From NCBI GenBank assembly GCA_965202585.1, contig OZ241827.1, positions 12,028,001 through 12,092,000 on the forward strand: a DNA stretch of 64,000 bases, in the 5' to 3' direction. Under the pieces are notes generated by a model. It had not been told where the DNA came from. It searched no databases and worked only from the letters and a program-made list of their open reading frames with translations. Of the stretch, positions 11,501 through 59,412 are shown piece by piece (position 1 is the stretch's first letter; each line of letters starts with the position of its first letter). This stretch comes from Thalia democratica. Lineage: Eukaryota. A program made the translations under genes and the position numbers.

Positions 11501-11699
11501 ATTCAGACGAGACTATACAAATAATGAATATTAACTTAGAGTAAATTTGTAATATTCTAGACTAAAAATAGTCCATTAGTATTTAAAACTTTATTTTAAA
11601 CACTATTAAGTTCTTAAAAACTTCTTCAATAAAAAAAAACATACTTAAAAAAAAATAACAGTTTACTTGCGTTTTGTTATAACACTAAGTAAAATCTAA

Positions 11700-13066: not shown

Positions 13067-13925
13067 GAGTTATCATAATTTTGAAGACAAAATATAAGAT
13101 ACAAATATTATACATTGTAAAAGAAGTATAAATTTATAGAATTTAATGTTTCAGCGTTATAAGAGGCCTGAAATAATAAGTTTAAAATTAAACGATCGAT
13201 TGTACTAGAATGCTTTGACCACAATTTGCATATTTTTTCTAAAAATCAAATAATAAACTATTTAAAACAAATTTTTATGGAACTTATCAACTAACAATTT
13301 TACTGTACACTGCTACAATACCGTACAATGAACAAACAATTTGTCTATTTCAATAAAAAATTTCATGCTAGATCGATTGTATTATAATTTTCTAGTAAAA
13401 AATCCACAACTATTGTGTGTGTAATGAAAATATTCAGGATTTTTATTTTAAAATATTCTAACCCAGTCCACAGGTATTAATTTACTTAAAAAACAAAAAA
13501 ATTTAATGAATTTAATGCTGATTACTTAAAATTTATAGTGTTTGTGTAGGTTGATTTGAACTAGTAGAACAACTTCATATACTTGCAGTTCTAAACCAAT
13601 ACACTTGAGAAAGTTTTTGGTGAAAACTATTAAAATTAAGGTTATGTTTAAGCTAATAATGTACCAGGCTTTACCATAGTAAGCTCTTTGAGCAGTTTTT
13701 GTAACTATAGGCTGCAAAGGGGTAAAAAGGGGGTCGTTGGTAGTAAAGAAGCCACAATGGGGCCAACAGACAATAATCTAAAGCTTGCACTTGACATTCT
13801 GAAATTTACAGTAAATTGATAAAAAAATCTTTAAGAGTATTATTAAAACTTGTATTAGAAAATCAGAGTTGATAGTAAAGGACAAAAAAAAACGTTTCCC
13901 GAGTACTTAAAGGCAGTTTTATAAC
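13067..13925. repeat. ~0.9-kb unit, copy 2, in the palindrome spacer
   Basis: Direct match to 11700-12595; 15615-15760 is likewise a direct copy of 12715-12865. Confidence 0.8.
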
Positions 13926-19900: not shown

Positions 19901-21055
19901 GGTATGATATGTTATAATAAAGTTAATTTGATACAAAATTCAGTTAAATTAATCAATCTATTATATAATTTTCTTTCTTTAAAAAAAACGACAGTTGGCA
20001 ATAAGCAGTTTAAAAACTGTTTAAAATGTTCCTTATATTTAAAAAACTTTTATCTTTGACTTTTACGTTGACCTAATAGTTTGTATTAAAAAATGATACA
20101 TTATAAAATTTTGTTACTCTGGTTTATGATGCTTAAAAATTATTTTGTTGTAAATTTATGTTTACTAATTATAAAAATAAAATTGTTTGCTTTATCTTTC
20201 CTGTTAAGATCTCAATATTTTTGTAAAACTAAATCTTTTAATTATGTTTAGTTGTTTGAACTCATGCGAGGAATTAGCTTTTATTAGTTTGTAATAAAAT
20301 ATAGATTAACTAAAATTAGAGCTTGATAAATATAATCTTATTTAAATCTAAGTAGTGCTATGCCGTAACTAAAGTTTCATAACTTAAAAGCCGTTTTAAA
20401 ATATTTTTTCTACTGAACATTTGGTTTTATAAAAACCATTTAAAGAATTTACAGTTTGTAGTAGCTTAATTATTATCAATAGGCTACTATTGTTTTCACC
20501 CCAATTTTTTTAATTTCACTAATTTTGATGCATGTTAAATAAAATTTCTAGGTTTTATTATATTAATTAAAAATTTTTGATAAAACATATCCAATTCAAG
20601 GTTGTTCCAGTTAAATTTTACGATGATTTTTTAATTTTTGAAAATGATTTAGCAAATTTTTTCAAAGCTTTTGTTAATTGGTAGTTTAATTATAGCCTTT
20701 TTCGTAACCAACCTAACCTAAACTTATAAAAAATTTAATTTTAAAAAATTTGATAAGAAATACAATTTATTATTTTTTGCTGATTCAACTTTTTTAGATC
20801 TAACTGAGTTTGACGTAAACTAGCGATGATTTTTATACTTGTCATTACGTTTTTCATACTTGAATATATACACTGTCACATAACATACATAGAGATATTA
20901 GTGGTTATTTATAAAATTATATAAAACCGAGAAAAAAATTCGAAATATTTTACTTAATAAATTATTTAATTTTAAGAACGTTAGTTTTAAATACAAATAA
21001 AATTAACAAAAGGGTTGATCATGCCAATTCGATCATCAGACCACAAGTTTCGGTA

Positions 21056-21098
21056 GACTGAGACCGGTTTCGTCCTTATTAGGACTCATCAGTCAGTC
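21056..21098 (-). ncRNA. Minimal type I hammerhead ribozyme
   Basis: Minus strand GACUGA-CUGAUGA-GUCCU AAUA AGGAC-GAAA-C CG G-UC-UCAGUC. Stem I GACUGA/UCAGUC (extendable to 21044-21114), complete core, stem II, minimal palindromic stem III ACCGGU, and a GUC cleavage triplet (cut between 21062 and 21061). Confidence 0.9.
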
Positions 21099-21239
21099 AC
21101 AACCGAAAAACTTGTAGTCGTCAATCTACAAACAGTTTATGATGCTTTCGCATAAAGCAACCATTTGCTGGCAATGATTAGTGACGTCAGTATTGTCTTT
21201 GCCGTGCAACGTTTAAAGCATTGTCCACTAGGCAAGACA

Positions 21240-21715
21240 TCTGGTACGCTCGTTCTGCAGACTTTCGCCGTTCTGCATCGTTCTGGTAAGCTCGTTCTGC
21301 ATCGGATCTGGTAAGCTCGTTCTGCATCGATCTGGTAAGCTCGTTCTGCATCGATCTGGTAAGCTCGTTCTGCATCGATCTGGTAAGCTCGTTCTGCATC
21401 GATCTGGTAAGCTCGTTCTGCATCGGATCTGGTAAGCTCGTTCTGCATCGTTCTGGTAAGCTCGTTCTGCATCGATCTGGTAAGCTCGTTCTGCATCGAT
21501 CTGGTAAGCTCGTTCTGCATCGATCTGGTAAGCTCGTTCTGCATCGGATCTGGTAAGCTCGTTCTGCATCGTTCTGGTAAGCTCGTTCTGCATCGTTCTG
21601 GTAAGCTCGTTCTGCATCGTTCTGGTAAGCTCGTTCTGCATCGATCTGGTAAGCTCGTTCTGCATCGATCTGGTAAGCTCGTTCTGCATCGATCTGGTAA
21701 GCTCGTTCTGCATCG
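21240..21715. repeat. 24-bp minisatellite (GATCTGGTAAGCTCGTTCTGCATC)n, about 18 units
   Basis: Tandem units with GTTCTGG/GATCTGG variants and occasional 25-nt units. This explains the three repetitive ORFs in the track. Confidence 0.95.
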
Positions 21716-23555
21716 GACTTGTTCTGCTGACTTTCGCCGATTTTGTTGATTGACAAATAAAATTAGAGTTAAATTTGAAGTTGCAAGGTAAAAGTTGTGT
21801 TGGTTTACAATAAAACATTAAGAGTTAATTGATTTTGTTCCAAAATCATAAAAATAATGTACGAACCTAGAATTTAGAACAATTTTTATTTTTCAAAGAA
21901 AAAATTGTAAAAAGTACGAAATATATGAAAAAAAAATTATAAAAAACTTAAAATTTTTATCAACACATTTATATAAAAATTAGAGCATCATTTTCGCACT
22001 TTTAATTTTTTTAATATTTGCTTAATTTTATTTGAAATTTAAATTATAAAAAAAAACTTAATTAAAAAGGCGAAAAGAAAGTAAAATATTTTATAAAAAA
22101 CTAAAAATAAATAGCATTAATGTGTTTTAAAGGAAGATAATTGATAAAAAGATTATGTTAGGAGTGCCTCCTCAGAATTTGTTAGCTAGACATTTTTATA
22201 ACCTTAAAGGAGAAATGCATTTAAGTAGCAACTCCTAGATAACTTATAATAAGCTTAAACACATCTTACAAACTTAAGTACATCACGAGCAACATAGTAC
22301 CTTAATTGTGTTTTATTAATTATTTAGTTTTATTCATTTATCGACACTTAACCTAAGACCAACTAACTTTAGAACATTTAATTTTTATTCTTCTAAGAAC
22401 CAATTCCAGGTTTTCGAGTTATTTTTTTGTGATTTTTTTAAATTTAAAGGTTATATATAAAAAAATGAATTGCTTATCTAATGATTTCTTAAAATTATAT
22501 TCACAAGTCAGTCTTAGCTGAAAAAACGTTGAAAATAATAATGATTTAGCAGCCTTTTTAAAGCTTTTGTTGATAAGTAGTTTATTGATAGCCTTCTCCC
22601 TATCCAACCTAACCGAAACATATCAAAAATTAAAGTTAAAAAAATAAGATAAGAAACAAATTTATTACGTTTTGCTGATTCAACTTTTTTGGTCCGACTG
22701 AATTTGAAGTAAACTAGCGATGATTTTTTTACTCTTTATTACGTTTTTCACACTTGTATAGTATGTTGTGTCTTATAACATACATAGAGATATTAGTTGT
22801 TTTTTATTAAACTTGTACAAAACGAGAAAAAATATTCAAAATGTTATGCTTAAGAAGTTATTTCATTTTAAAGACGGTAGTTTTAAAAACAAAATAAATT
22901 CAGAGTTAGATTTTAAGTTGCAATGTTAAAAGTTGTGTTGGTTTACAATAAAACATTTAGAGTCAATAAATTTTGTTCCAAAGTCATTAAAATAATGTAC
23001 AAACCTAGTATTTAGAATATTTTTTATTTTTCAAACGAAAAAAATTGTATAAACTACGAAATAGATAAACAAAAAAGATATATAAAACTTAGAATTTTTG
23101 TTAATACATATATAACAAACTTAGAACTAATTTATAATAGGAAAATATTTGGTAAAATTATTATGTTAGGAGTGCCTCCTAAGAATTTTATTACTAAATA
23201 TTTGTGTAATCTGAAAGGAGAAATGCTTTAGATAACAACTCATAGATTACTTATAATAAGCTTAAACATATCTCACAAATTTAACCTTATCATATAATAC
23301 CTTAACTATGTTTTATTAATATTTTAGTTATAACATTTTAAGAACACTTAATGGTTTACACAACAATAATACTTGGTAACGACTAACAATAGCACAATAG
23401 TAAGCTTACACACTTCTTACAAATATGTATTCATTGTGGATAAAAAATACTAGGAGTATGTCTTATTTTATTTCTTTTTTGCTAACTAAACTCCTTAGTT
23501 TACATATAACTGACACCAAATTATAAATATCAGAAGCATAATAATAAACTTAAAT

Positions 23556-41932: not shown

Positions 41933-42357
41933 GGGTGCACGACTATTCAAATTCGGACAACTCAAATTCCGACAATTCAAATACTTATAAAAAAAAATTA
42001 AAGGGTTATAACTAAAAAAGTAATGCATATTTGTCAAATATAAAAAATACATATGTAGGTCCTATTAATATCTACAAGCCATTTTTTTTTGCTTTTGCAA
42101 AACATTAAATATTTTTTTAGATATGACTTAAATAATAAAAAAAATATAGTTATCTTAAGTAATTTTGAAATATCTTAAAAAGTATTTAAGATTTCGCAAA
42201 AAGGAAAAAGTTGCTTGTAGGTTTTAATAAGATCTACATACGTTTTTTATATTTAAAAAAAATTATAACAATTTTTGAGATATAGTCTTTTAAATGTTTT
42301 TTCAAGAGTTTGAATTGTCGGAATTTGAGTTGTCCTAATTTGGATTGTCATGTAACC
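41933..42357. mobile_element. Mutator-like foldback MITE
   Basis: ~50-bp TIRs (GGGTGCACGACTATTCAAATTCGGACAACTC...), perfect 9-bp TSD AAGATTTTG (41924-41932 and 42358-42366), and an internal inverted repeat. Confidence 0.85.
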
Positions 42358-42743
42358 AAGATTTTGAACTAATTAAAAAAAATTCTATACCCAATCTACA
42401 TGAAATAGTCTAGTCAACTATTTGAAAAAGTTTATTAGCTTAAAGATGATTGCTTAATTTATCATTTATCATGTAGGGTGATATTTTTATCACCCTAAAT
42501 AGCCTAACTCAGGCAAGAATGAAATTTTTACAAAACTCAGGATAACTCAGGCAAGTTTTTTTTTTTAATTTCCTGTTACTTTTAATACTTCTCGAAAATC
42601 TGAATCTAATTTATTATAAATTTTAACTGATATTTAGTTGTATTTGTTTAATATTTTATCAATAGCTAGATTTCTATTAATTGAGAGGTTTTCTGAAAAC
42701 TTTTTTTAAAATAAATCTATTATTTAAAATATTGTACTATTTA

Positions 42744-43706
42744 TGTATTTAATGGTACTTATCAGTTTTTTTAGTAAATATTTTTTTAATTATTTGATGT
42801 AAAACTTGTTTTGGTAAAAGGAATATTGGTTTTTGATTTAATCTGTGGAATTAAGTAACTCGGTAAAATAGAGTGGGAGGCCCGCAGAATTGTAAATGAC
42901 CAACCGAGTAGCTTTTTAAAAATTTTAGTTAAATCAAGCCCGCGAAAGATAAAGCTGCACCACCGCTAAATCAATTTTATAGCTTTTACTTTATATTCTA
43001 AAATTTTTGATTGAGATTCAAAATAAGATTTTAGTTAGATTTTACGGATCATTTTAAAATTGCATTATTAGTTCAAAATTTGAAAAACTAATTAAAATTC
43101 ATGTTTCTACGAGACAAAATAAACAATTGAGTAATTTTTTTTTGTTTCATTGTTTTACTTTTTGTCTTATTATAAACAACATTTAAAGAAAAGTTACTCT
43201 TCCAGATTAATTGCTAAGTTATAAAAAAACTAAATATAACAATGTCGGAAAAATACAACGATTTGTCCCAAAACAGTAGTGATGACGTTCTACCATTTCT
43301 ACATAATAATGAGCATATGCTTTCATTGGAAGACCAAGACAAAATTCTTTCAAAAATGTGTGATGACGACTTTATTAGACGCGAAATAGAAAGCATTGGT
43401 TCTTTCGCGCTAACTGCAACAAACAGTTTAATGCAAGATGAGCAAAACAGAATAAATATAAACGAGCAAGAAAGTTGTCAGCCCGCTGTGTTTTCTTCGA
43501 CAAATCAAGCTCCTAGCTACACAGTGCAAAATCAATATGAAAATAATCCAAGTTGTGCAAGAGGTCAGCCTTTGTATCAAAATGTTCAGAATTGCACATT
43601 TCAAGCGCACCAAGGTGGCATGCTTAATTACTCAAACTATCATACATTAACTTCTTCTTCTGACTATAGTCTACAACAAAATTGTCAATCAAATACGAAC
43701 AGCTGT
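42744..43706. repeat. 963-bp inverted duplication arm (other arm 52465-53427)
   Basis: Near-identical reverse complement covering the promoter and 5' part of exon 1 of the double-homeobox gene. Confidence 0.95.
43242..43706 (+). pseudogene. Truncated duplicate of exon 1 of the double-homeobox gene
   Basis: MSEKYNDLSQ...QSNTNSC, then it breaks into the tandem array; no homeobox exons follow. Confidence 0.88.
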
Positions 43707-46700
43707 ATTCTATATTCAAAATTGATTTTAAATATTTCATTGAAAAAAAAAGTTAAAAAAGTATAGGATTTATGAAAAAATTGTGAGAAAAAAATAAGTT
43801 ACTGATCAGAAAATGAAAGGACAAAAAAGTGGGCGCTGGACAGCCTGCCTGTTTTATTTCGGCTGCCTGTCCTGCGTACCAAGTTCACGTCCCAGTGGAA
43901 TTACAATCTCCTTCTGAAAAAACGACCTAACAAGGTTTACAATCTAATGCACATCGCGCTAACAGGAGTGCTAGCAGCTAATCGCATTTTTATATACTTG
44001 CGTGGTCGTCCCCATAAAAGAGCAACCACCGGGACTCGAACTCGGGACGCAGGGCCGGCAGTCGCATAAGCAAACCGCTGGGCCATACAGGCGCCCGCCT
44101 GTCTACTCTAATTACTGTATATAAACCATCTATATTCAAAATTGATTTTAAATATTTCATTGAAAAAAAAAGTTAATAAAGTATAGGATTTATTAAAAAT
44201 TGTGAGAAAAAAATAAGTTACTGATCATAAATTGAAAGGACAAAAAAGTGGGCGCTGGACAGCCTGCCTGTTTGTTTTCGGCTGCCTGTCCTGCGTACCA
44301 AGTTCACGTCCCAGTGGAATTACAATTTCCTTCTGAAAAAACGACCTAACAAGGTTTACAATCTAATGCACATCGCGCTAACAGGAGTGCTAGCAGCTAA
44401 TCGCATTTTTATATACTTGCGTGGTCGTCCCCATAAAAGAGCAACCACCGGGACTCGAACTCGGGACGCAGGGCCGGCAGTCGCATAAGCAAACCGCTGG
44501 GCCATACAGGCGCCCGCCTGTCTACTCTAATTACTGTATATAAACCATCTATATTCAAAATTGATTTTAAATATTTCATTGAAAAAAAAAGTTAAAAAAG
44601 TATAGGATTTATTAAAAATTGTGAGAAAAAAATAAGTTACTGATCAGAAATTGAAAGGACAAAAAAGTGGGCGCTGGACAGCCTGCCTGTTTGATTTCGG
44701 CTGCCTGTCCTGCGTACCAAGTTCACGTCCCAGTGGAATTACAATCTCCTTCTGAAAAAACGACCTAACAAGGTTTACAATCTAATGCACATCGCGCTAA
44801 CAAGAGTGCTAGCAGCTAATCGCATTTTTATATACTTGCGTGGTCGTCCCCATAAAAGAGCAACCACCGGGACTCGAAATCGGGACGCAGGGCCGGCAGT
44901 CGCATAAGCAAACCGCTGGGCCATACAGGCGCCCGCCTGTCTACTCTAATTACTGTATATAAACCATCTATATTCAAAATTGTTTTTTAATATTTCATTG
45001 AAAAAAAAAAGTTAAAAAAGTATAGGATTTGTGAAAAAATTGTGAGAAAAAAAGAAGTTACTGATCAGAAATTGAAAGGACAAAAAAGTGGGCGCTGGAC
45101 AGCCTGCCTGTTTGATTTCGGCTGCCTGTCCTGCGTACCAAGTTCAAGTCCCAGTGGAATTACAATCTCCTTCTGAAAAAACGACCTTACAAGGTTTACA
45201 ATCTAATGCACATCGCGCTAACAAGAGTGCTAGCAGCTAATCGCATTTTTATATACTTGCGTGGTCGTCCCCATAAAAGAGCAACCACCGGGACTCGAAC
45301 TCGGGACGCAGGGCCGGCAGTCGCATAAGCAAACCGCTGGGCCATACAGGCGCCCGCCTGTCTAGATCCCAGTGCGTCACATTACAATCTCCTTCTGAAA
45401 AAACGACCTAACAAGGTTTACAATCTAATGCACATCGCGCTAACAAGAGTGCTAGCAGCTAATCGCATTTTTATATACTTGCGTGGTCGTCCCCATCTAA
45501 GAGCAACCACCGGGACTCGAACTCGGGACGCAGGGCCGGCAGTCGCATAAGCAAACCGCTGGGCCATACAGGCGCCCGCCTGTATACTCTAATTACTGTA
45601 TATAAACCATCTATATTCAAAATTGTTTTTTAATATTTCATTGAAAAAAAAAAGTTAAAAAAGTATAGGATTTATGAAAAAATTGTGAGAAAAAAAGAAG
45701 TTACTGATCAGAAATTGAAAGGACAAAAAAGTGGGCGCTGGACAGCCTGCCTGTTTGATTTCGGCTGCCTGTCCTGCGTACCAAGTTCACGTCCCAGTGG
45801 AATTACAATCTCCTTCTGAAAAAACGACCTAACAAGGTTTACAATCTAATGCACATCGCGCTAACAGGAGTGCTAGCAGCTAATCGCATTTTTATATACT
45901 TGCGTGGTCGTCCCCATAAAAGAGCAACCACCGGGACTCGAACTCGGGACGCAGGGCCGGCAGTCGCATAAGCAAACCGCTGGGCCATACAGGCGCCCGC
46001 CTGTCTACTCTAATTACTGTATATAAACCATCTATATTCTAAATTGATTTTAAATATTTCATTGAAAAAAAAAGTTAAAAAAGTATAGGATTTATAAAAA
46101 ATTGTGAGAAAAAAATAAGTTACTGATCAGAAATTGAAAGGACAAAAAAGTGGGCGCTGGACAGCCTGCCTGTTTGATTTCAGCTGCCTGTCCTGCGTAC
46201 CAAGTTCACGTCCCAGTGGAACTACAATCTCCTTCTGAAAAAACGACCTAACAAGGTTTACAATCTAATGCACATCGCGCTAACAAGAGTGCTAGCAGCT
46301 AATCGCATTTTTATATACTTGCGTGGTCGTCCCCATAAAAGAGCAGCCACCGGGACTCGAACTCGGGACGCAGGGCCGGCAGTCGCATAAGCAAACCGCT
46401 GGGCCATACAGGCGCCCGCCTGTCTACTCTAATTACTGTATATAAACCATCTATATTTAAAATTGATTTTAAATATTTCATTGAAAAAAAAAGTTAAAAA
46501 AGTATAGGATTTATTAAAAATTGTGAGAAAAAAATAAGTTACTGATCAGAAATTGAAAGGACAAAAAAGTGGGCGCTGGACAGCCTGCCTGTTTGATTTC
46601 GGCTGCCTGTCCTGCGTACCAAGTTCACGTCCGAGTAGAATTACAATCTCCTTCTGAAAAAACGACCTAACAAGGTTTACAATCTAATGCACATCGCGCT

Positions 46701-49116
46701 AACAGGAGTGCTAGCAGCTAATCGCATTTTTATATACTTGCGTGGTCGTCCCCATAAAAGAGCAACCACCGGGACTCGAACTCGGGACGCAGGGCCGGCA
46801 GTCGCATAAGCAAACCGCTGGGCCATACAGGCGCCCGCCTGTCTACTCTAATTACTGTATATAAACCATCTATATTCAAAATTGATTTTAAATATTTCAT
46901 TGAAAAAAAAAGTTAAAAAAGTATAGGATTTATTAAAAATTGTGAGAAAAAAATAAGTTACTGATCAGAAATTGAAAGGACAAAAAAGTGGGCGCTAGAC
47001 AGCCTGCCTGTTTGTTTCGGCTGCCTGTCCTGCGTACCAAGTTCACGTCCCAGTTGAATTACAATCTCCTTCTGAAAAAACGACCTTTAAGGTTTACAAT
47101 CTTATGCACATCGCGCTAACAAGAGTGCTAGCAGCTAATCGCATTTTTATATACTTGCGTGGTCGTCCCCATAAAAGAGCAACCACCGGGACTTGAACTC
47201 GGGACGCAGGGCTGGCAGTCGCATAAGCAAACCGCTGGGCCATACAGGCGCCCGCCTGTCTACTCTAATTACTGTATATAAACCATCTATATTCAAAATT
47301 GTTTTTTAATATTTCATTGAAAAAAAAAAGTTAAAAAAGTATAGGATTTGTGAAAAAATTGTGAGAAAAAAAGAAGTTACTGATCAGAAATTGAAAGGAC
47401 AAAAAAGTGGGCGCTGGACAGCCTGCCTGTTTGATTTCGGCTGCCTATCCTGCGTACCAAGTTCACGTCCCAGTGGAATTACAATCTCCTTCTGAAAAAA
47501 CGACCTTACAAGGTTTACAATCTAATGCACATCGCGCTAACAAGAGTGCTAGCAGCTAATCGCATTTTTATATACTTGCGTGGTCGTCCCCATAAAAGAG
47601 CAACCACCGGGACTCGAGCTCGAGACGCAGGGCCGGCAGTCGCATAAGCAAACCGCTGGGCCATACAGGCGCCCGCCTGTCTACTCTAATTACTGTATAT
47701 AAACCATCTATATTCAAAATTGATTTTAAATATTTCATTGAAAAAAAAAAAGTTAAAAAAGTATAGGATTTATAAAAAAATTGTGAGAAAAAAATAAGTT
47801 ACTGATCAGAAATTGAAAGGACAAAAAAGTGGGCGCTGGACAGCCTGCCTGTTTGATTTCGGCTGCCTGTCCTGCGTACCAAGTTCACGTCCCAGTGGAA
47901 TTACAATCTCCTTCTGAAAAAACGACCTAACAAGGTTTACAATCTAATGCACATCGCGCTAACAGGAGTGCTAGCAGCTAATCGCATTTTTATATACTTG
48001 CGTGGTCGTCCCCATAGAAGAGCAACCACCGGGACTCGAACTCGGGACGCAGGGCCGGCAGTCGCATAAGCAAACCGCTGGGCCATACAGGCGCCCGCCT
48101 GTCTACTCTAATTACTGTATATAAACCATCTATATTCAAAATTGATTTTAAATATTTCATTGAAAAAAAAAAAGTTAAAAAAGTATAGGATTTATGAAAA
48201 AATTGTGAGAAAAAAATAAGTTACTGATCAGAAATTGAAAGGACAAAAAAGTGGGCGCTGGACAGCCTGCCTGTTTGATTTCGGCTGCCTGTCCTGCGTA
48301 CCAAGTTCACGTCCCAGTGGAATTACAATCTCCTTCTGAAAAAACGACCTAACAAGGTTTACAATCTAATGCACATCGCGCTAACAGGAGTGCTAGCAGC
48401 TAATCGCATTTTTATATACTTGCGTGGTCGTCCCCATAGAAGAGCAACCACCGGGACTCGAACTTGGGACGCAGGGCCGGCAGTCGCATAAGCAAACCGC
48501 TGGGCCATACAGGCGCCCGCCTGTCTACTCTAATTACTGTATATAAACCATCTATATTCAAAATTGTTTTTTAATATTTCATTGAAAAAAAAAAGTTAAA
48601 AATGTATAGGATTTATGAAAAAATTGTGAGAAAAAAAGAAGTTACTGATCAGAAATTGAAAGGACAAAAAAGTGGGCGCTGGACAGCCTGCCTGTTTGAT
48701 TTCGGCTGCCTGTCCTGCTTACCAAGTTCACGTCCCAGTGGAATTACAATCTCCTTCTGAAAAAACGACCTAACAAGGTTTACAATCTAATGCACATCGC
48801 GCTAACAAGAGTGCTAGCAGCTAATCGCATTTTTATATACTTGCGTGGTCGTCCCCATAAAAGAGCAACCACCGGGACTCGAACTCGGGACGCAGGGCCG
48901 GCAGTCGCATAAGCAAACCGCTGGGCCATATAGGCGCCCGCCTGTCTACTCTAATTACTGTATATAAACCATCTATATTCAAAATTGATTTTAAATATTT
49001 CATTGAAAAAAAAAGTTAAAAAATTGTGAGAAAAAAAGAAGTTACTGATCAGAAATTGAAAGGACAAAAAAGTGGGCGCTGGACAGCCTGCCTGTTTGAT
49101 TTCGGCTGCCTGTCCT
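43707..49116 (-). repeat. Tandem array of ~420-bp units (13 tRNA-like heads, one 0.22-kb partial unit at ~45363-45585)
   Basis: Marker GGGACTCGA at about 44031, 44450, 44869, 45290, 45512, 45933, 46352, 46771, 47189, 47610, 48031, 48453 and 48874; few differences between units. Confidence 0.97.
44022..44102 (-). ncRNA. tRNA-derived (SINE2-like) Pol III head, first unit shown, repeated in every unit
   Basis: A box TGGCCCAGCGG (44085-44075), B box/T arm CCGAGTTCGAGTCCCGG, Gly-like loop CTGCCGG, upstream TTTATATA, downstream T4 and T6 runs. The acceptor stem does not pair. Confidence 0.65.
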
Positions 49117-50019
49117 ATTTTACATGTTACTGAAAAATTATAAGTTTCCGTAACAAAAAATGCTCGTTTTTGCCCAGCTGAAATAGATTTCAAATAAAAC
49201 TTTAATTGTGACGTGATAGTAGGTAAAAGTTTAAAAGTAGCATTTTTTCTGGAAACCTTTTTTGAATGATTTATTATCAAGTTTTACATTCTGTTATACT
49301 GGTATTTTAAAAATGTTAAAGTTCAAAACATTTTATTTACCTTAAAAATAAATTATTTCAGCTGTGCTTTTTATTTACTCTGTTCCAAACAAAATATTAG
49401 AATTATTGATAATGCTCGTAAAAATTATGTTCTCAATTGTTTTAGTTAACTGACCTGCATTTTTTGCAAAAACCTCGTCCGGGAATTTTTGTAATATTTT
49501 AGCTGTTTTAGAAGTTAATTTAATTTGATCTTTAAAAAAACATTATAGTAGTTGCAGAATAGTAAAAGTATAAAACAGTTTTTAATAATATGTAATGTTT
49601 AACTACAAATTAGATAAAGTAGTATATTTAAACCAAATAAGTCTTACTGTAGTTTATACAGCAAGTAAAGTTTAAAACAAAAAAAAAAGACTACTTGTAA
49701 AACATCAAACGCGCATTGTTTTAATTAACTATTTGCATTTGGAACGGTTTTAATTTCCGACATGGTAGTTTTATTCCAATAAATAACAGCACTGAAATTT
49801 TAATAGTTTATTACTACAAATAAAAATACAATGACCTTAAAGATTTAATAGAATTCATAACAGTTTATTATAAAATTTATATATGACAAGCTTTTCGTAT
49901 CTGAAAGACATCTAAAAATAATTTTAGTTTTTAACAACATTCTAACTTGTTTACTATTGAACTAAAAGTCTAATATAAAAAAAAACTTGGCAAAATCTAA
50001 AATATATTAGAACTTTCGT

Positions 50020-50200
50020 ATATAAGTTATCGAAATTCGAGTTGCCAAAATTATTAATTTTATCGTCGGAACTTAAGGTTCCTTGTTTAAATTTTTGAAT
50101 TTAAGTTTTTCAAAACTAATTTGTCAGAGTTTAAATTGTCCGAATTTGAGTTGATGTCGGAATATAAATTGTCGGATTTTGAGTTGTCCTAAAGTGAGTT
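50020..50200. mobile_element. Fragments of Mutator-like TIR repeats related to 41933-42357
   Basis: Repeated TTGTCCGAATTTGAGTTG and TTGTCGGATTTTGAGTTGTCCTAA motifs. Confidence 0.5.
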
Positions 50201-50696
50201 TCGAGTTTTAGTTTTCATAATTTAGTTAGTAACGCATCATTTATAGATCATTCCGATTGAGTTGCTCACGTAGGTATAAATAATTGAATAGGTTTTGATT
50301 CGAACAAGAGTATAAATGTGTATTGTTAATCTAAACAAAAATACAAATCAGGTAGATATGAAGTTTATTTCTTTCGAGCATAAGTTCTAAACATAAAAGT
50401 AGTTAAAACAGCAGAAAACAGGTTATGTAGGTATATTTATAATTGAAAAAATATTTATATGGTGTCCATCTTAATATCATTTACAAAACGATAAAATAGT
50501 ATGTAATTAAAAAAAATATGCGTATAGAAAATAACTAAACATATTTTAAAGGTTTGTTCACCATACAATTATTTGTTTTAACACAAATAAAAATCATACT
50601 AGAAGCTAATCAACTTTTAATAAAGTGTTCGAATAATCTTTAACTAAGTAAAGTAGTGACAAAATGAAAAATTAGTTTCAGTAAATACTGTATATA

Positions 50697-52929
50697 TCAT
50701 GCAAGTTCATTTCTTTTAATTTCTTTTCTTTTCTTTTCCTCTTGTCGTTTGTTATTGAACCAACACTGTAAAAAGAAATGTTAGTTAGTCATTTATGTAA
50801 AAACATCAAACTAATTCTTTGAAAGAAGAAGAAAAAATACAACTTCATTATTATATTAAAAGACTAAAGAGGGTTATTATTATTCTTTAAATTAATTGAA
50901 GTATGAATACATAAAATACACTTAAATCTTCCAAGTGTCCTAAAAGCAACTTCTCTCTATCTAAAAACAACATAACAAATAAAAAAAATTTAATCAAATT
51001 CTTTTATATAAAAACAAACTATTTACTCTGCATTTATTTTCAGGCAGGCCAATTTTTTCGACAAGTTGAAAAAACTCTTTTTTGTTTGGTCTTCTATTTT
51101 CCCTGTTAGTTTTTTCGTACAGTTCTTCGAAACATTTCAACTGATGTGAAGTATAGCTGGTGCGGGGTCTAAGTTTTGAAACGTTTTTCATTATAAGTAA
51201 TAGCACTTTTGTTTCAATATATGTTTAAACATACAAACTTAATCTTCATTGTGTGTTGAAAACTAGCTTTGATTGTCAAAAAAACATTTTTTACGTGTTT
51301 TTATAACTTTGAAATTTTTTAATGAAACTCTTACCTTTTCTTATTTTTTTTCGTTTTCTGGTCTATGACACAGGACTCCCTTTCTAAAATACATTATTAG
51401 GTAATTTTTTTTATATGTTATTTATCAAACTTACTTAAATACAAAATTAATATTTTTTTTTAAATCTAGGTAGAAAATATGTTTCAGAAACACTATTGTT
51501 TTTTTGGTCATATTTTTTCAACTTATTTGTTTCAAATACTAGGATAACAAACAAACAAACTATTATTTTCAATGAGTTTAATTTCTTTTGAATAAGTTGC
51601 AAGAAGGTGTTTAAATATTTCCTCATGATTACCTCCCTTAATCTTCTCAACTGCAATACCTTGACTTTTATCTTTATGTATTCTATTTTGAAACCAGGAC
51701 TAAAAAACTTTAAAAATATTAGAGCTTTATAAATTAATTTATTAATTTTTAGTAAAAAAAAGTAAACTTTTATTATTTCTTTTATTACATGAACTTGATA
51801 AAAAAACAAACTTACTGTTAGTTCTCTTTTACTAAGACCAGTTAATTTTCCAAGTTTGTCCCTTTGATCTGGCAGTGGGTGTTTAATTCTTTCATAAAAA
51901 TATTCTAACATTGATGATTGAGAGAATGTTAAGTGTATCCTTTGTCTGTATGTAAAATCATACTTAAACTTTCCGAATTTTCACACATTACATTATTTAA
52001 GTTAATTTTGAAAATTCAAATAAAATAAATTTGTAAACTAGTTAAATTTTCTACTAGTTTAAAGTTTTGAATTTACTAACTTTCGTTTTTTTAGTTTAGA
52101 TTCCTGCTGTTTACATTGTTCGTTGGAATTATCAAATTCAAGTTTTAAATTATTATTTAAAATCAATGCATCGGATGAAGGTTCTGAAACTTTTTGCTGC
52201 AAACACCACTTTCCAAGTTTGGCATCTATGGATGATAAATAATAATTGACTGCTAAGAAAAAAAAAATTTTCAGTTAAAAAATTTAATTAAAGTTTACCT
52301 TTCATAGAGGGGTATGCACGTGGCAGTTGAGCAAAACTATCTGCTTGAGCAGGATTAACCGTTGTTACATTGAAATTATTTGCACAAGAAGGTTTCAGCT
52401 GGATACCATCTTGCAAACAAGTACTCAACTGCTGGTAGTTGTCAAAACATCTGTTTGACTGGTAACAGCTGTTCGTATTTGATTGACAATTTTGTTGTAG
52501 ACTATAGTCAGAAGAAGAAGTTAATGTATGATAGTTTGAGTAATTAGGTATGCCACCTTGTTGCGCTTGAAATGTACAATTCTGAACGTTTTGATACAAA
52601 GGCTGAGCACTTGCAAAACTTGGATAACTTTCATATTGATTTTGCACTGTGTAGCTAGGAGCTTGATTTGTCGAAGAAAACACAGCGGGCTGACAACTTT
52701 CTTGCTCGTTTATATTTATTCTGTTTTGCTCATCTTGCATTAAACTGTTTGTTGCAGCTAGCGCGAAAGAACCAATGCTTTCTATTTCGCGTCTAATAAA
52801 GTCGTCATCACACATTTTTGAAAGAATTTTGTCTTGGTCTTCCAATGAAAGCATATGTTCATCATTATGTAGAAATGGTAGAACGTCATCACTACTGTTT
52901 TGGGACAAATCGTTGTATTTTTCCGACAT
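50697..52929 (-). CDS. Double-homeodomain transcription factor, 7 exons, 443 aa (410 aa with the alternative exon-4 donor)
   Basis: Exons 52929-52299, 52252-52081, 51945-51816, 51699-51561 (or -51660), 51383-51335, 51168-51027 and 50765-50697 are all in frame. HD1 RKQRIHLTFSQSSMLEYFYERIKHPLPDQRDKLGKLTGLSKRELT|SWFQNRI; HD2 KKRPRTSYTSHQLKCFEELYEKTNRENRRPNKKEFFQLVEKIGLPENKCR|CWFNNKRQ. Confidence 0.88.
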
Positions 52930-53194
52930 TGTTATATTTAGTTTTTTTATAACTTAGCAATTAATCTGGAAGAGTAACATTACTTTAAATGTTGTTTATA
53001 ATAAGACAAAAAGTAAAACAATGAAACAAAAAAAAATTACTCAATTGTTTATTTTGTCTCGTAGAAATATGAATTTTAATTAGTTTTTCAAATTTTGAAC
53101 TAATAATGCAATTTTAAAATGATCCGTAAAATCTAACTAAAATCTTATTTTGAATCTCAATCAAAAATTTTAGAATATAAAGTAAAAGCTATAA

Positions 53195-53305
53195 AATTGA
53201 TTTAGCGGTGGTGCAGCTTTATCTTTCGCGGGCTTGATTTAACTAAAATTTTTAAAAAGCTACTCGGTTGGTCATTTACAATTCTGCGGGCCTCCCACTC
53301 TATTT
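53195..53305. mobile_element. Probable hAT MITE end fragment in the double-homeobox promoter (mirrored at ~42870-42970)
   Basis: TAGCGGTGGTGCAGC terminus-like sequence with GCGGGC motifs; no TSD identified. Confidence 0.35.
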
Positions 53306-53629
53306 TACCTAGTTACTTAATTCCACAGATTAAATCAAAAACCAATATTCCTTTTACCAAAACAAGTTTTACATCAAATAATTAAAAAAATATTTACTAA
53401 AAAAACTGATAAGTACCATTAAATACAGAGTCAATAGTTATTACAGCTTATTGATAAATACAAAAATTGATAACAATATTTAATTATAGTAATCATTATT
53501 TATAAAAACGTTTTTCCAGCTTAGACTGTTTTTAGATATAATTTCAAGAAATAATTAGATTAGCAAATCACTATTCTTAGATAAAAGCAACAAACTAAAA
53601 AAATTCGCAAAAAAAAAACTGAAAAACCT

Positions 53630-54021
53630 AGATTTGGTTCTTAGAAGAAAAAAAAATTAAGTGTTTTTAAGTTGAGTGTTCTGAAAAGAACAAAAATAAA
53701 ATACTAATTATTTTTGTTTACTGTTATATAAATTTGATATATTCAAATTTGTAAGATATGTTTATGTTTATTATAAGTTATCTAGGAGTTGCTACCTAAG
53801 TGCATTTCTCCTTTCAGATTATACAAATGTTAAGCTAACAAATTCTTAGGAGGCACTCCTAACATAATCTTTTTATCAATTATCTTCCTATAAAAAATAT
53901 TATTTCCTTTTTTATAAATTTTTTTAGAATATTTTTGTTTCATTTGAATTTTTTTAATCGAAATGTCTTGTCTAAATTTAAATAAAAAACTAAAATTAAG
54001 CAAATGTTAAAAATTAAAAGT
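53630..54021. promoter_or_regulatory. Shared upstream module, ~0.7-1.1 kb 5' of the double-homeobox gene
   Basis: High similarity to 7540-7931 and 6690-6800 (upstream of BET-like copy A), same orientation. Regulatory function is inferred. Confidence 0.65.
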
Positions 54022-54520
54022 TGTAATGATATTAACATCTCATTTTCGTATTTTAAAGTGGAGGTTGTTAACTGTTTTACGCAGACTTTGTGACGTGCTT
54101 CCAGTATTAAAAAAACAAACATATTTTTATAAAAAAACAAACATTTTTTTATATAAGGAGTAAAACTTCCTTTGAATTAATATAAAATCAGCGCGTTTTC
54201 TTAAAAGAGTGAGTTCTAAAAACCATCGGTCACTAAACATTGTTAAACTGAGGGAAGTAACGTCGTAGAGAATCTATTCACTCAAGATATTCAATAGTTG
54301 CTATCGACGCATAAGGGACTAAGAGTTCGGAAATTCACTACGATTGTTGGGTGATAGTTAGTATACATTCGAAGAAACTGTTAGTCTTGTAATTATTGTA
54401 TTATTTTTTAATCGTGTTGTAGTTTTTGCATGCACTTATTTCTCTTATAATTTTGTAAATAAATTTCACAACTAAAAAAGAAATATATTTTAGCTTAAAC
54501 CTACTTTATTAAAATCGTAT

Positions 54521-55873
54521 ATGTCGAAACATCATAATAAGAATAAGGATAATTATAAACCGTTATCTTTACAACAAATCACCACGCGCTCCAATAAAAA
54601 GAAAATGAACACCAGGGCAGATACAGCAGCTCACAGTGGAGACCACACAGCGTCCAATAATAACCCGGAATCTTCGAAACATACGGTTACAAAAAAAATA
54701 ACAGAAGAAAATCGCGCAAAGTCTACCTTTAATCCAAATGCTCCCGATTTAGATAACGTTATACGCGAGGGGGAAAATTCTTTTCCGTCAATTAACCCCC
54801 AAGAAAGTCAGGGAAATATTAATTTAGCTTCTCAAAACCGCGGCCTAGACGATCTTACGCATGCACGAGAAATGTACAACCAAAAGCTAGCAGCGGTCCA
54901 AAAATTAGAAGAGCAGGAAGAACTAGTTAAATTGCGAAACGAAATTAGTAAGTTAGATATTAGATTAGGCTATAATAAGGTAGAACAAATACCAGAGCCT
55001 TACGAGCGCGAAATTCCACTAAAACGCGACCCTTTTTTTGAAAATTACGAAAATCAAAGTTATATAAATAATAATTTTAACGATACATTCAGAGCACAAA
55101 GATTAAGTAAAAAGTTTAAGAGATTAGACGTTGTAAAAAATCCTCGAGATACTATTAACTACTTTGAAGAAGAACTACATGGTGAAGGTATTGTAAACGA
55201 TTTAGAAAAATACAATTATTTAATAGGGTTTTGGCCAAGAGTCGACATTTCTGATTACTATAAGATGTCTGAAAGAAATAAAAGAAATTATAGTTCACTA
55301 AAAAACTTTTGTTCAAACCGCGACAACGAATTAACTGAAATTTTAGATAAAATTCCTATCTGGGAAACTAAAACAACTTTTAATCAAATCTTTTCCACCG
55401 CCACGAAATGGGCGAAGTGCCCGGAAGAAGACAGAATAAAGTTTTTTCTAGCGTATTTAATGCCATCCTCAATAAAAAGTAAAATTAAAGAGTATTACGA
55501 TGCGGAACTGGACGTCTTTAGACGTAAAAGTCAAGCTATATGGAACGCTCATAAGGAAAGCGCATTACAGTCAAATCAAGTGAATTACAATAGATATCAC
55601 AGACCTGATCATTATACCAAAAAAAATAATTATCAAAGAAGGATGCGTTCTAACCCTCAACAAGAGTCTTATCCTAGAAATAATAATACAAACAACAACC
55701 TTGGTCATCAACAACAAAATAGAAACAACTACAACTCGAACCAATCTTTTCAAAGATACCGAGATAATGAAAGAAGAGAATACAATTATTCAAATTCATA
55801 TTCACGTCCTTATGCTCATACAAACAATCAAAATCGACAACAGGGAAACGATTCCCCGTCGTCCCGACAATAA
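54521..55873 (+). CDS. gag: Gag polyprotein (450 aa, N/Q/R-rich C-terminus, no CCHC knuckle)
   Basis: Long ORF directly upstream of pol; coiled-coil-like and basic segments. Confidence 0.8.
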   Translation: MSKHHNKNKDNYKPLSLQQITTRSNKKKMNTRADTAAHSGDHTASNNNPESSKHTVTKKITEENRAKSTFNPNAPDLDNVIREGENSFPSINPQESQGNINLASQNRGLDDLTHAREMYNQKLAAVQKLEEQEELVKLRNEISKLDIRLGYNKVEQIPEPYEREIPLKRDPFFENYENQSYINNNFNDTFRAQRLSKKFKRLDVVKNPRDTINYFEEELHGEGIVNDLEKYNYLIGFWPRVDISDYYKMSERNKRNYSSLKNFCSNRDNELTEILDKIPIWETKTTFNQIFSTATKWAKCPEEDRIKFFLAYLMPSSIKSKIKEYYDAELDVFRRKSQAIWNAHKESALQSNQVNYNRYHRPDHYTKKNNYQRRMRSNPQQESYPRNNNTNNNLGHQQQNRNNYNSNQSFQRYRDNERREYNYSNSYSRPYAHTNNQNRQQGNDSPSSRQ

Positions 55874-55995: not shown

Positions 55996-58900
55996 ATGCG
56001 AAATCCTAAATTAAATTATTTTAAAAATTCCAATAACAAACCTGAATTAACTCTAAATAGTCCAAAAAATTCTCTCTCAAATACTAAACTAATAGCTAAC
56101 AATAACCTTAATACTAATAGTTCAAAATGTAATAATATCTGGAACTTCAAAATTAAAAAGGCTTCACCTGTTAATTTTTATAAACTACCACAAAACTTAC
56201 TATTCACCATAGATAATAATTCTAATGTTTTATTTTTGGTAAATACCGGATGTGAGATTTCCATCCTTCCCAAAAATCTTACAAATGGCATTAATCACTA
56301 TTTTAAACCACAAAGTAAAACAATTAAAGGAATAGGTAACACTCCTATACATCCTATAGGGAGTGTTGATGTTATATTAGAGTTTGGTAATTTAAAAGCT
56401 GTTAAACATAATTTTTGGGTCACACAAGAATATAGGGATTATGGAATAATTGGGTTAGATTTCTTAAAAACTCATAAACTCTCTATTTCTTTAGAAGAAC
56501 TGAGGTTGTATCAATACAAAACCAAACGTGTAGTCAAATTATATACAGCTGACGAATTGCCTAAATCGGTAGTAGTTTCTTCGCACAATCTAGAAATAGT
56601 TAATAGTGAAATTACTTCAGACTTTCAAAATAAATGTAGGGATCTACTTAATGAATTTCCAGAGCTTACAGAAACACCTGATTATACTCGACCGGTAAAA
56701 CACGGGCATTCTTTAGAAATCATAGTTGAAAATTTTAATCCTAAATTAGTTAAAGCGCGTAGATGTAATGGTATAAGACGCAAAATGGTTGAACAAACGT
56801 TCGATGATCTTATAAATAGGGGAGCAATGTCACGTGGTACGTCAGACATGTGTGCTTCACCCATTACTATTGTTCCAAAAAAAGACAATAGTATTAGGGT
56901 ATGTATAGATTATACAGTTCTTAATGCACACACACGCCCAATGTCTTACCCCTTGCCTAGGATTGATGAACTTGCAGAAATTATACCTGAAGGAACACAG
57001 TATTTTTCTTGTCTAGACCTTAAAGAAGCTTACTACTCATTACCTATAAAACCCAGCTCTCAAAAATATGCCGCAATCATTGCTCACCACGGGGTATTCA
57101 TACCCCAACGCACGTCATTCGGGCTGAAAAATGCCCCTATGGCGTTTCAGTCCATGATGCAAAGCATATTAGCGGGTTGTTATGAATTTACGTTTGTTTA
57201 TCTAGATGATATTCTAATTTTTAGTAAATCCAAAATGGACCATTTAAATCACCTCAGAAAAATTTTTCAAACTTTACACAAAAATGGGTTATACCTTAAT
57301 ATGAAGAAATGCGTTTTTGCTCAACATAGACTTGACTTCCTCGGTCACTCGGTAGGGATTGACGGGGTTGATGTTTTACAAACCAAAATAAAAGCAATTA
57401 GGGAACTTCCCAAACCTACGAACCGCAAAGAGCTAAAACGATTTCTTGGGTTATGTAACTATTATCATAGGCACATCCCAAAGCTAGCCGAAACAACTGC
57501 TCCACTTAACGAAATATCAGGGGGCCCTAAATCTACAAATAGGAGACCTTTACATCTAAACGAAACTCAAATTAAATCCTACAACGACACGTTGGCTACC
57601 TTATCAAAAGCAGCGACTCTCGCTTTTGAAGACCATGAAAAACCATTAATTGTTTATTCAGATGCATCCGACAGTCATGTCGGAGCAGTGCTGGAACAAG
57701 AGGGTAAGAATGGTGAAAAACGTCCCCTCGCATTTTTTTCTAAAAAACTGCCAGCCTTGAAAGCTGTCAAATCGACATTTTTTAAAGAATTGCGTGCATT
57801 ATACTTAAGTTTAAAACATTTTCAAAGTCGTATTATAGGACGACAACTGTTTGTTAAGACTGACAGTCTGTCCGTGGCAAAAGCTATTAATAATCCTATT
57901 GGGAACCAATCTCCAATAGAACAGCGCTACATTGCCGCAATAAAAGAATTTAATCCAACAGTTATGCATATTACAGGAGATGAAAATAAAGTAGCCGATA
58001 CATTAAGTCGACCACCTTTAGTAACAGCTATGTACGTTAAAACGTCACATGATGATTCGGATTACATTTATACATCTGAAGAAGATACCGAAGATAGTTT
58101 GTCTGACTATCAGTCATCTGAAAGCGAAGAAGAAGTTATTACTTCAGAATCTTTAAACAAGGAAGAAATAGCTAAGCTACAAAGTAAAGAGCCTGATTTG
58201 ATAAAAACAGCATATGAGCATAAAAAAACAGTCAAATATTTAAAACCAGAAAATCTGGCAGTAATAGTTGAAAATGAACAGCAAAGAATCATCCTACCTT
58301 TTGCTTTAAGATTATCTGCTTACGAAATAGCACATGGTTATTTACATCTAGGGAAAGAGAAATCAGTGTTAGCAACTGCAAAAGACTATTGGTGGCCAAC
58401 TTTACGAAAAGATGTAGAGTACTGGGTTCAGTCATGCTATACCTGTCAAGCCACGAGAACAACTAGGCATAACCGCCCAAAAATTGGGCTATACCCCGCC
58501 AATATCGAGCGTTTTCAATTCGTACACCTAGACCTCGTAGGTCCGATTGAAAAGAAATCGGAAAATTATAACTATATTCTTACAATGAGAGACAGATCAA
58601 CTGGCTTTCTAGCCACTGTTCCGATTGTGGATAAGAAAGCAGAAACAGTCAGAGAAGCTTTTATACAAAACTGGTGTGGTCACTATGGCATTCCACAAGT
58701 CATAATGACTGATAATGGACGTGAATTTTCAAACTCGATTCTAACTCGCACTTTCGAGGAACTTGGTATTGATCATAGATTTTCACCTCCTTACAGTCCT
58801 CAAACTAATGGATTCATCGAGAGGGTACATAATCCAATAAATGTAGCACTTCGAGCACTTCCTGACAAAACAAACTGGCCCCTACATTTGCCATTGATTA

Positions 58901-59412
58901 CTATAAGCATAAACAACTCTTTCATGGAAGGTTCACCTTTTACACCATCACAATATGCGTTGGGAACGTGTGTGAATGTCAGTGGTCGTGTGATGTTAAA
59001 CGAAGTAAGCGATATCGCATCGGAAAATGATGTTTTTGAATCTAGAATTTTTCTACATACAATGTCAAAAGTTAAGAAAGTACAAAAAAATTACAAACAG
59101 AAATCCGTTTATTATGAACCGGGACTGTTTAACAGCGAACAGGTTTGGTTAAAACGGAAAAGTAGAAAAAAGCTCAGTTCTTTATACCAAGGGCCTTACC
59201 CCGTGCATTCATTTAGCGAACACTCGGCGATTATTGATAAAAATTCAAAACTTTTGAAAGTAAGCATAAGAAACATTAAAGCTTATATTCCCAGGGAAAA
59301 CCTTAACGAAAAAGGTGAAATAGTAGGGAAAAGCATGGCATATAACTTAAGGGAACGCAAAAACAAAATTAATTATGCAGAAAGTTCGTCCGATGACGAA
59401 ACTAATGTCTAG
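55996..59412 (+). CDS. pol: Pol polyprotein (protease, RT, RNase H, integrase); probably translated as Gag-Pol from ~55849
   Basis: PR FLVNTGCEIS; RT RVCIDY...LDLKEAYY...YLDD; RH SDASD...TDS...ADTLSR; IN H-x3-H...CxxC, LDLVGP, TDNGREF, NGFIERVH. Confidence 0.97.
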   Translation: MRNPKLNYFKNSNNKPELTLNSPKNSLSNTKLIANNNLNTNSSKCNNIWNFKIKKASPVNFYKLPQNLLFTIDNNSNVLFLVNTGCEISILPKNLTNGINHYFKPQSKTIKGIGNTPIHPIGSVDVILEFGNLKAVKHNFWVTQEYRDYGIIGLDFLKTHKLSISLEELRLYQYKTKRVVKLYTADELPKSVVVSSHNLEIVNSEITSDFQNKCRDLLNEFPELTETPDYTRPVKHGHSLEIIVENFNPKLVKARRCNGIRRKMVEQTFDDLINRGAMSRGTSDMCASPITIVPKKDNSIRVCIDYTVLNAHTRPMSYPLPRIDELAEIIPEGTQYFSCLDLKEAYYSLPIKPSSQKYAAIIAHHGVFIPQRTSFGLKNAPMAFQSMMQSILAGCYEFTFVYLDDILIFSKSKMDHLNHLRKIFQTLHKNGLYLNMKKCVFAQHRLDFLGHSVGIDGVDVLQTKIKAIRELPKPTNRKELKRFLGLCNYYHRHIPKLAETTAPLNEISGGPKSTNRRPLHLNETQIKSYNDTLATLSKAATLAFEDHEKPLIVYSDASDSHVGAVLEQEGKNGEKRPLAFFSKKLPALKAVKSTFFKELRALYLSLKHFQSRIIGRQLFVKTDSLSVAKAINNPIGNQSPIEQRYIAAIKEFNPTVMHITGDENKVADTLSRPPLVTAMYVKTSHDDSDYIYTSEEDTEDSLSDYQSSESEEEVITSESLNKEEIAKLQSKEPDLIKTAYEHKKTVKYLKPENLAVIVENEQQRIILPFALRLSAYEIAHGYLHLGKEKSVLATAKDYWWPTLRKDVEYWVQSCYTCQATRTTRHNRPKIGLYPANIERFQFVHLDLVGPIEKKSENYNYILTMRDRSTGFLATVPIVDKKAETVREAFIQNWCGHYGIPQVIMTDNGREFSNSILTRTFEELGIDHRFSPPYSPQTNGFIERVHNPINVALRALPDKTNWPLHLPLITISINNSFMEGSPFTPSQYALGTCVNVSGRVMLNEVSDIASENDVFESRIFLHTMSKVKKVQKNYKQKSVYYEPGLFNSEQVWLKRKSRKKLSSLYQGPYPVHSFSEHSAIIDKNSKLLKVSIRNIKAYIPRENLNEKGEIVGKSMAYNLRERKNKINYAESSSDDETNV

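Follow-up and report, generated by a model that had tools for sequence, protein, structure and literature searches.

The best-known amplified arrays of double-homeobox genes are those of placental mammals, in which DUX sets off embryonic genome activation and, when misexpressed, causes facioscapulohumeral muscular dystrophy (FSHD). The DUX genes occur in placental mammals only and arose from the single-homeobox gene sDUX by homeobox duplication (PMC3004920), and DUXA carries one intron in each homeobox (PMC2211742). DUX and Obox arrays provide precedents for amplified homeobox arrays (PMC2211742, PMC13558733, PMC5787275, PMC11196112), Crxos gained a second homeodomain independently (PMC5787275, PMC2211742), and the Caenorhabditis HOCHOB and Dictyostelium groups show that individual lineages have repeatedly given rise to double-homeodomain genes of high divergence (PMC4901127). 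Here, we analyze a 64,000-nucleotide stretch of the genome of the pelagic tunicate Thalia democratica (contig OZ241827.1, positions 12,028,001 to 12,092,000; referred to as the window), which carries a seven-exon gene with two homeoboxes on its minus strand, at window positions 52929 to 50697. We consider it likely that this gene is an intact copy from a family of double-homeodomain transcription factors that is lineage-specific, was recently amplified, and comprises about 38 loci.

Gene model and the two homeodomains

The original prediction, made from the letters of the window, had proposed seven exons spliced in frame into an acidic, then Q/N/S-rich N-terminus followed by two homeodomains (HD1 and HD2), each interrupted after residue 46 by a phase-0 intron, and had remarked that only fragments of the gene appeared among the open reading frames (ORFs). 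All of this held up. When the exons were assembled by script, all seven had GT-AG borders, and together they gave 1233 nt encoding 410 amino acids (aa), with no internal stop in the window copy as first read; introns 1 to 6 have phases 1, 2, 0, 1, 2, and 0. Residues 1 to 60 are acidic (14 D+E versus 5 K+R), Q+N+S make up 41% of residues 61 to 210, and the gene does appear only in pieces in the mechanical ORF list of the window. The exons and homeodomains are given below; omega is the ratio of non-synonymous to synonymous rates within the family.

52299 to 52929, minus strand: exon 1, 631 nt, with the ATG, acidic residues 1-60, and then a low-complexity region rich in Q, N, S, and Y
52081 to 52252, minus strand: exon 2, 172 nt as first read, its 3' end encoding the basic N-terminal arm of HD1
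51816 to 51945, minus strand: exon 3, HD1 from residue 3 to residue 46, covering helices 1 and 2 and the first part of helix 3; the intron after it has phase 0
51660 to 51699, minus strand: exon 4, 40 nt, HD1 residues 47-59 with the motif SWFQNRIHKDKSQ, in which Ile replaces the usual Arg53
51335 to 51383, minus strand: exon 5, 49 nt, encoding the 13 linker residues that separate the homeodomains, then the basic arm of HD2
51027 to 51168, minus strand: exon 6, HD2 from residue 3 to residue 46, with 4 inserted residues in the loop between helices 1 and 2; the intron after it has phase 0
50697 to 50765, minus strand: exon 7, helix 3 of HD2 (CWFNNKRQ...) and the stop codon
51660 to 52088, minus strand: HD1, 60 residues, Q50, Pfam score 41.9 bits, omega 0.20, intron at 46/47
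50724 to 51342, minus strand: HD2, 64 residues, N50, Pfam score 46.0 bits, omega 0.32, intron at 46/47

The two homeodomains were checked against the Pfam profile PF00046, which has a cut-off of 22.9 bits. Spliced HD1 matched profile positions 1 to 56 of 57 (E = 9e-11) and spliced HD2 positions 1 to 57 of 57 (E = 5e-12), whereas the exon pieces before splicing scored just 19.1 (HD1) and 24.7 (HD2) bits. Since the spliced domains match the whole profile, the proposed junctions restore two complete homeodomains. The motifs WFQN and WFNN are present and, with scores above the cut-off together with W48, F49, and N51, the domains belong to the homeodomain superfamily. In this register, the phase-0 intron falls between residues 46 and 47 of each homeodomain, and it is kept in all paralogs for both domains and, for HD1, in a divergent marine relative (L010, see below). 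The last residue of HD1, E60, is split by intron 4, with its final two bases at 51383-51382 in exon 5. The 4-residue insertion between helices 1 and 2 of HD2 is a gap in every alignment with solved homeodomains.

The assignment to the PRD class, also part of the original prediction, stood as far as the position of the intron is concerned, but the sequence rankings mix classes and position 20 departs from the PRD pattern. Many PRD-class homeodomains have the 46/47 intron, which has served to class the divergent HOPX and LEUTX as PRD, and Phe occupies homeodomain position 20 in all human PRD-class members but LEUTX (PMC2211742). In both HD1 and HD2, position 20 is Tyr and not Phe, a conservative change. 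Both domains also have Pro at position 26, which is usual outside the ANTP class. Neither a paired box nor an OAR motif was found, the Pfam scan covering exons 1 and 2 and the protein ending 0 to 6 residues past HD2. Among solved structures (phmmer against the Protein Data Bank), the best single-domain matches of HD1 were HoxB13 (31.7 bits), HHEX (27.5), Pitx2 (27.1), Paired (26.2), and DUX4 (26.1), with HoxB13/HoxA13 at about 30 to 32 bits and Prrx2, PBX, and ZHX1 also within 25 to 27 bits. Those of HD2 were En2 (30.8 bits), Dlx5 (28.6), Pax6 (28.2), Lhx9 (28.0), and Alx4 (27.6), Engrailed too being among the best matches (27 to 31 bits). For HD1 as for HD2, the best matches thus mix classes within about 4 bits. 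A PRD-class placement is plausible from the intron position alone, sequence similarity leaving the class unsettled.

HD1 and HD2 match each other at merely 11.5 bits and are not each other's closest relatives. A recent internal homeobox duplication was rejected on this score, and the pair would stem either from an old duplication or from the fusion of two different genes.

Comparison with the paralogs refines the gene model in two places. The exon-2 acceptor at 52252 is missing in a divergent subfamily, and an alternative in-frame acceptor 27 nt downstream (exon start 52225, 145 nt) is shared by the two subfamilies and a distant relative; if exon 2 starts at 52225, the protein may have 401 rather than 410 aa. 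Exon 7 is 70 nt long in nearly all paralogs, but the window copy is short of one A in an A-run (around 50729-50733). The stop codon of most paralogs, a TAA six codons earlier, is consequently out of frame in the window copy, which extends to a TGA at 50697 and has a tail six residues longer. As the deletion lies after homeodomain position 58, it should leave the fold unaffected, and the missing A could be a homopolymer assembly error. The start codon in exon 1 is kept in the paralogs and in divergent marine relatives.

Exons 1 and 2 matched no Pfam family, and a search of the N-terminus against the ESM Atlas gave only a sub-threshold lead (0.78). Rfam and ARAGORN scans around the gene found nothing. 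Searches of sequencing runs turned up no RNA run that covers the locus; three DNA unitig runs cover exons and introns alike and are uninformative on splicing. Upstream of the ATG, by about 280 to 320 bp (around 53205-53250), lies a comparatively G+C-rich element with GCCCGCGAAAGATAAAGCTGCACCAC on the gene strand, which is kept across 33 copies within a promoter region that is A+T-rich elsewhere. Also conserved is a TTTCAG that resembles an acceptor and lies some 40 nt ahead of the ATG; it could be the acceptor of a trans-splice or of a 5'-untranslated region intron.

A coding family maintained by selection

The family census was made in the genome's own 802-Mb assembly. Exon 1 had at least 49 matches, and exact-motif scans found the helix-3 exon of HD1 at 38 loci and that of HD2 at 35 loci, with zero control hits for either. 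The approximately 38 loci are clustered on four chromosome-scale contigs (C2, C4, C7, and C10) and on the small contig C390. On C2, copies lie at 11.3 to 12.1 Mb, the window copy included, with two more at 89.6 and 91.4 Mb; on C4, they lie at 15.8 to 17.0 Mb with a spacing of about 40 kb, plus one at 26.1 Mb; C7 has copies at 35.3 to 35.5 and 44.8 to 45.0 Mb, and C10 at 24.8 to 24.9 Mb. The gene model was projected onto 32 paralogous loci, 28 of them completely, and the seven exons with their splice sites were found in nearly every copy. Fifteen of the 28 fully projected copies are intact (one of these with a GT-to-AT donor), 13 are broken by stops or frameshifts, and further copies are truncated tandem partials. 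The family shows birth-and-death turnover.

Identity to the window copy was 93.4% in exons and 90.9% in introns, with the homeobox exons reaching 94 to 98%. Splice dinucleotides were conserved at 669 of 672 positions (99.6%), and all length differences among intact copies were multiples of three. With a maximum-likelihood codon model (GY+F3X4), omega was 0.27 for both homeodomains jointly (likelihood ratio test against omega = 1, 38.8; P = 5e-10), 0.20 for HD1, 0.32 for HD2, and 0.57 for the N-terminus (P = 1e-4). Parsimony counts on the family tree were in line with these values, at 0.32 for the homeodomains and 0.55 elsewhere. The fast divergence named in the original prediction is a relative matter, with an N-terminus that is loosely constrained but two homeodomains that show clear purifying selection. 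The 13-residue linker between the homeodomains showed no coding constraint (13 non-synonymous versus 1 synonymous change). At the other extreme, a 32-nt core of the HD1 helix-3 exon (exon 4) was identical in 28 of 38 loci and a 30-nt core of the HD2 helix-3 exon (exon 7) in 25 of 35. This identity extends to synonymous sites, in a family that overall differs by 7 to 10%. It indicates either gene conversion or some additional constraint, for instance from splicing signals in exons this short.

Diverged relatives of the gene were found in Tara Oceans marine metagenomes. One of them, L010, is a 2.4-kb contig in which the start codon, the split between exons 3 and 4, and Ile53 are all retained and the core of exon 4 is conserved. 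Identity is 74% in the HD1 exon and only 39 to 46% in the N-terminus. The contigs of two further relatives are too short and end before the homeoboxes. Two scans of JGI metagenomes, with alignments of the HD2 and HD1 exons, confirmed no relative. A representative protein library returned only ORF fragments, from marine metagenomes. A word-indexed protein library, whose length filter would exclude a 400-aa protein, returned three exon-1 fragments only and zero matches to the read-through ORF that starts inside HD1. Taken together, the exon and intron identities, the splice sites, the in-frame indels, the omega values, and the conservation in L010 show that this is a coding family maintained by selection, if much more loosely than classical developmental homeobox genes. 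The copy number of about 38, the exon-2 acceptor at 52225, the 1-nt deletion in exon 7, and the evidence for selection all go beyond the original prediction, and we regard the family as undescribed, lineage-specific, and recently amplified.

Two features of the window describe the duplicated unit and a partial copy next to it.

50010 to 54021, minus strand: 4.0-kb core unit, comprising 1.09 kb upstream, the gene, and 0.69 kb downstream, collinear in all copies
42744 to 43706, plus strand: truncated inverted paralog, with the promoter region and exon 1 codons 1-165, convergent with the full copy

The core unit is 83 to 91% identical to the copies on C390, C4, C7, C10, and C2. Past the core, other copies run into blocks that resemble positions 6.6 to 23.3 kb of the window. 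The spread of the family looks like segmental duplication, and the mosaic identity among copies suggests gene conversion. The end of the truncated paralog coincides with the first base of a tandem array at 43707-49116, and this array apparently took the place of the 3' portion of one gene in a convergent pair; ARAGORN found no tRNAs in window positions 42000 to 54100.

Window positions 6600 to 23350 form an inverted pair, whose arms (about 6.6 to 16.5 kb and 23.3 to 16.5 kb) match each other. This region is about 78 to 95% similar to DNA directly upstream of the copies on C390, C4, C7, C10, and C2, which places the homeobox gene within a repeated block of far greater size. At three places on C4 (16178033-16180705, 15780225-15782844, and 16975972-16978603), a full copy is preceded, by about 2 kb, by a partial copy that has exons 1 to 4 without the HD2 exons, with a common ATGG variant in exon 4. 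These pairs represent a secondary tandem duplication that was itself copied within the large block. A young, intact-looking long terminal repeat (LTR) retroelement of the Ty3/gypsy type occupies the plus strand between 54022 and at least 60000, at a distance of 1.09 kb upstream from the ATG. Its ORFs span 54521-55873 (zero Pfam hits) and 55996-59412 (protease, reverse transcriptase, RNase H, and integrase). Copies that are 98 to 99% identical occur on at least seven other contigs, together with an older family at about 79% identity.

The same assembly contains a mitochondrial contig (C1833) on which COX1 reads through TGA and has 35 AGA/AGG codons at conserved glycines of bovine COX1, for example in the motifs GGFGN and DPAGGGDP. 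This is the ascidian mitochondrial code, which tunicates in general employ (PMC7047913), and with the Tara Oceans relatives it makes the host a tunicate, probably a pelagic one. Hydra, first suspected from a G+C content of 27%, was rejected on the same two grounds. Several degraded pieces of COX1 that contain many stops, at C4:56.84-56.95 Mb (clustered within about 100 kb) and C757:31.3-32.1 kb, look like nuclear copies of mitochondrial DNA.

Proposed function and alternative explanations

We propose that the two homeodomains, separated by the 13-residue linker, would bind adjacent half-sites on one DNA molecule, as DUX4 does; the linker between the DUX4 homeodomains is of similar length. The acidic residues 1 to 60 and the Q/N-rich region would serve as an activation or condensate-forming module. 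One target motif would be common to all copies, given recognition-helix exons that hardly vary even in nucleotide sequence. The high copy number would then serve a short, strong burst of expression, for which, judging from the amplified and fast-evolving DUX and Obox arrays (PMC13558733, PMC5787275, PMC11196112), the germline or the early embryo is our best guess.

Several observations weigh against a functional transcription factor family with the window copy as an intact member. About half of the copies are broken, no RNA run covering the locus was found, neither of the two large protein libraries contained an annotated full-length protein (the length filter in one of them excludes about 400 aa), and patterns spanning the exon 3/4 and 6/7 junctions found no processed retrocopy in the whole genome. 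Gene conversion among copies can distort an omega estimate made on a single tree. HD1 lacks Arg53 and HD2 has the unusual N50, K52, and loop insertion, for which reason DNA binding is assumed here. Finally, the exon-7 deletion is private to the window copy, and the LTR element cuts this copy off from the flank present in other copies. One could therefore hold that the gene is a non-functional passenger of large segmental duplications and that the window copy is an unexpressed young pseudogene-in-waiting, whose frame is open only because the duplications are recent. The 13 of 28 projected copies with stops or frameshifts would fit this, as would the private deletion and the retroelement close upstream of the window copy, the more than 10 kb of collinear flank to which the duplicated blocks extend beyond the gene in other copies, and the outcome of the run searches, in which no RNA from the locus was found. 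Such a passenger would, however, be expected neither to have an omega significantly below 1 in all regions, with the lowest values in the homeodomains, nor to conserve exons better than introns (93.4% versus 90.9%) and splice sites at 99.6%. Its intact copies would not be limited to in-frame indels, and HD1 would not be 74% identical in a relative (L010) whose N-terminus has fallen to about 40%. We consider the passenger explanation unlikely.

Two further alternatives concern the unit itself. The join between the homeodomains hangs on two tiny predicted exons of 40 and 49 nt, the linker is unconstrained, with its 13 non-synonymous changes against 1 synonymous, and the window copy has an ATG in intron 5 that is in frame with HD2, all of which could mean that two adjacent single-homeobox genes are present. 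A single transcript for both homeodomains is favored because the phases (1, 2, 0) close the frame exactly, because exon 5 and its splice sites are kept (49 nt in 26 of 28 copies despite A-runs, AG/GT in all), and because several intact paralogs, such as L017 and L027, have the intron-5 ATG out of frame. The gap between exons 5 and 6 is also just 166 bp and leaves little room for a promoter, and we regard separate genes as very improbable. It would be more surprising still if the core unit were the cargo of a mobile element, or a gene captured by one, that had spread to four chromosomes. The sharp edges of the 4.0-kb core (50010-54021) in all copies on C2, C4, C7, C10, and C390, in a genome rich in young repeats, would suit such an origin, but in most copies the homology runs collinearly beyond the core into further shared blocks, and clustering at about 40-kb spacing is typical of segmental duplication. 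Neither a transposase nor a reverse transcriptase was seen inside the unit, and no terminal repeats either, no systematic search having been made for such repeats or for target-site duplications.

We therefore regard the double-homeodomain family as a well-supported gene-family discovery and, for now, not a functional one. With it, the gene repertoire of pelagic tunicates, which is poorly known, gains a homeobox family that is lineage-specific and unannotated. Tunicates are the sister group of vertebrates, and a bolder suggestion is that this tunicate independently built a DUX-like system, in which amplified double-homeodomain activators would be expressed briefly and strongly, either in the germline or when the embryonic genome is activated, and might act on repeat-derived promoters. 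This suggestion is speculative and has a small chance of being correct. If true, the multicopy double-homeobox pioneer factor would be a convergent solution and not a peculiarity of placental mammals. A selectively maintained family of about 38 loci would provide a natural replicate for asking why such factors are repeatedly multicopy and fast-evolving, and would likewise probe whether the double-homeobox architecture is tied to early-embryo or germline biology.

Comparison with known double-homeobox systems

Caenorhabditis HOCHOB and the Dictyostelium double-homeobox group resemble the tunicate family as highly divergent double-homeodomain genes that arose independently in single lineages (PMC4901127). 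They belong to unrelated taxa, a PRD-type intron pattern is not reported for them in the account consulted (PMC4901127), and the comparison is by description only. HOPX is similar in that its divergent homeodomain was put in the PRD class mainly through the 46/47 intron and has an insertion between helices 1 and 2 (PMC2211742), a precedent for the loop insertion in HD2. In contrast to the tunicate gene, HOPX is a single-copy gene with a single homeodomain and a one-residue insertion, and it does not bind DNA.

The eutherian ETCHbox and PRD-like arrays (the mouse Obox cluster, the double-homeodomain Crxos, LEUTX, and TPRX) share with the tunicate family a lineage-restricted distribution, divergent sequences, tandem amplification, and the 46/47 intron. 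Those families trace to Crx/Otx-type ancestors and are expressed before implantation, whereas the tunicate family is read from genomic sequence only.

The closest resemblance in layout is to DUX, both to DUXA, DUXB, DUXC, and Duxbl and to the DUX4/Dux arrays, with two homeodomains that a short linker separates, homeoboxes that each contain an intron at 46/47, and multicopy arrays in which many copies are broken (PMC2211742, PMC3004920, PMC13558733). Among solved structures, double-homeodomain constructs of DUX4 also gave the best whole-chain E-value to HD1, but only by summing two domains; per domain, the scores to DUX4 were 17 to 26 bits, no better than to many other homeodomains. The differences are as marked. 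HD1 and HD2 are very unlike each other, HD2 has its 4-residue loop insertion, and the putative activation region of the tunicate protein is N-terminal. The frame stops right after HD2 in all copies, so that a C-terminal transactivation domain of the DUX4/DUXC type is absent. The tunicate copies bear introns and lie in blocks about 40 kb apart, unlike the 3.3-kb DUX retrogene macrosatellite. Of the features that define DUX genes, the tunicate gene has the two linked, intron-bearing homeoboxes, on one predicted transcript, but not descent from sDUX or homeodomains that cluster with DUX or sDUX. The original prediction of an origin independent of DUX was borne out: the host is a tunicate and DUX is limited to placental mammals, and the resemblance is therefore convergent. 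The double-homeobox layout, itself of a well-known kind, arose here independently of mammalian DUX, and what is new is the lineage-specific family that carries it.

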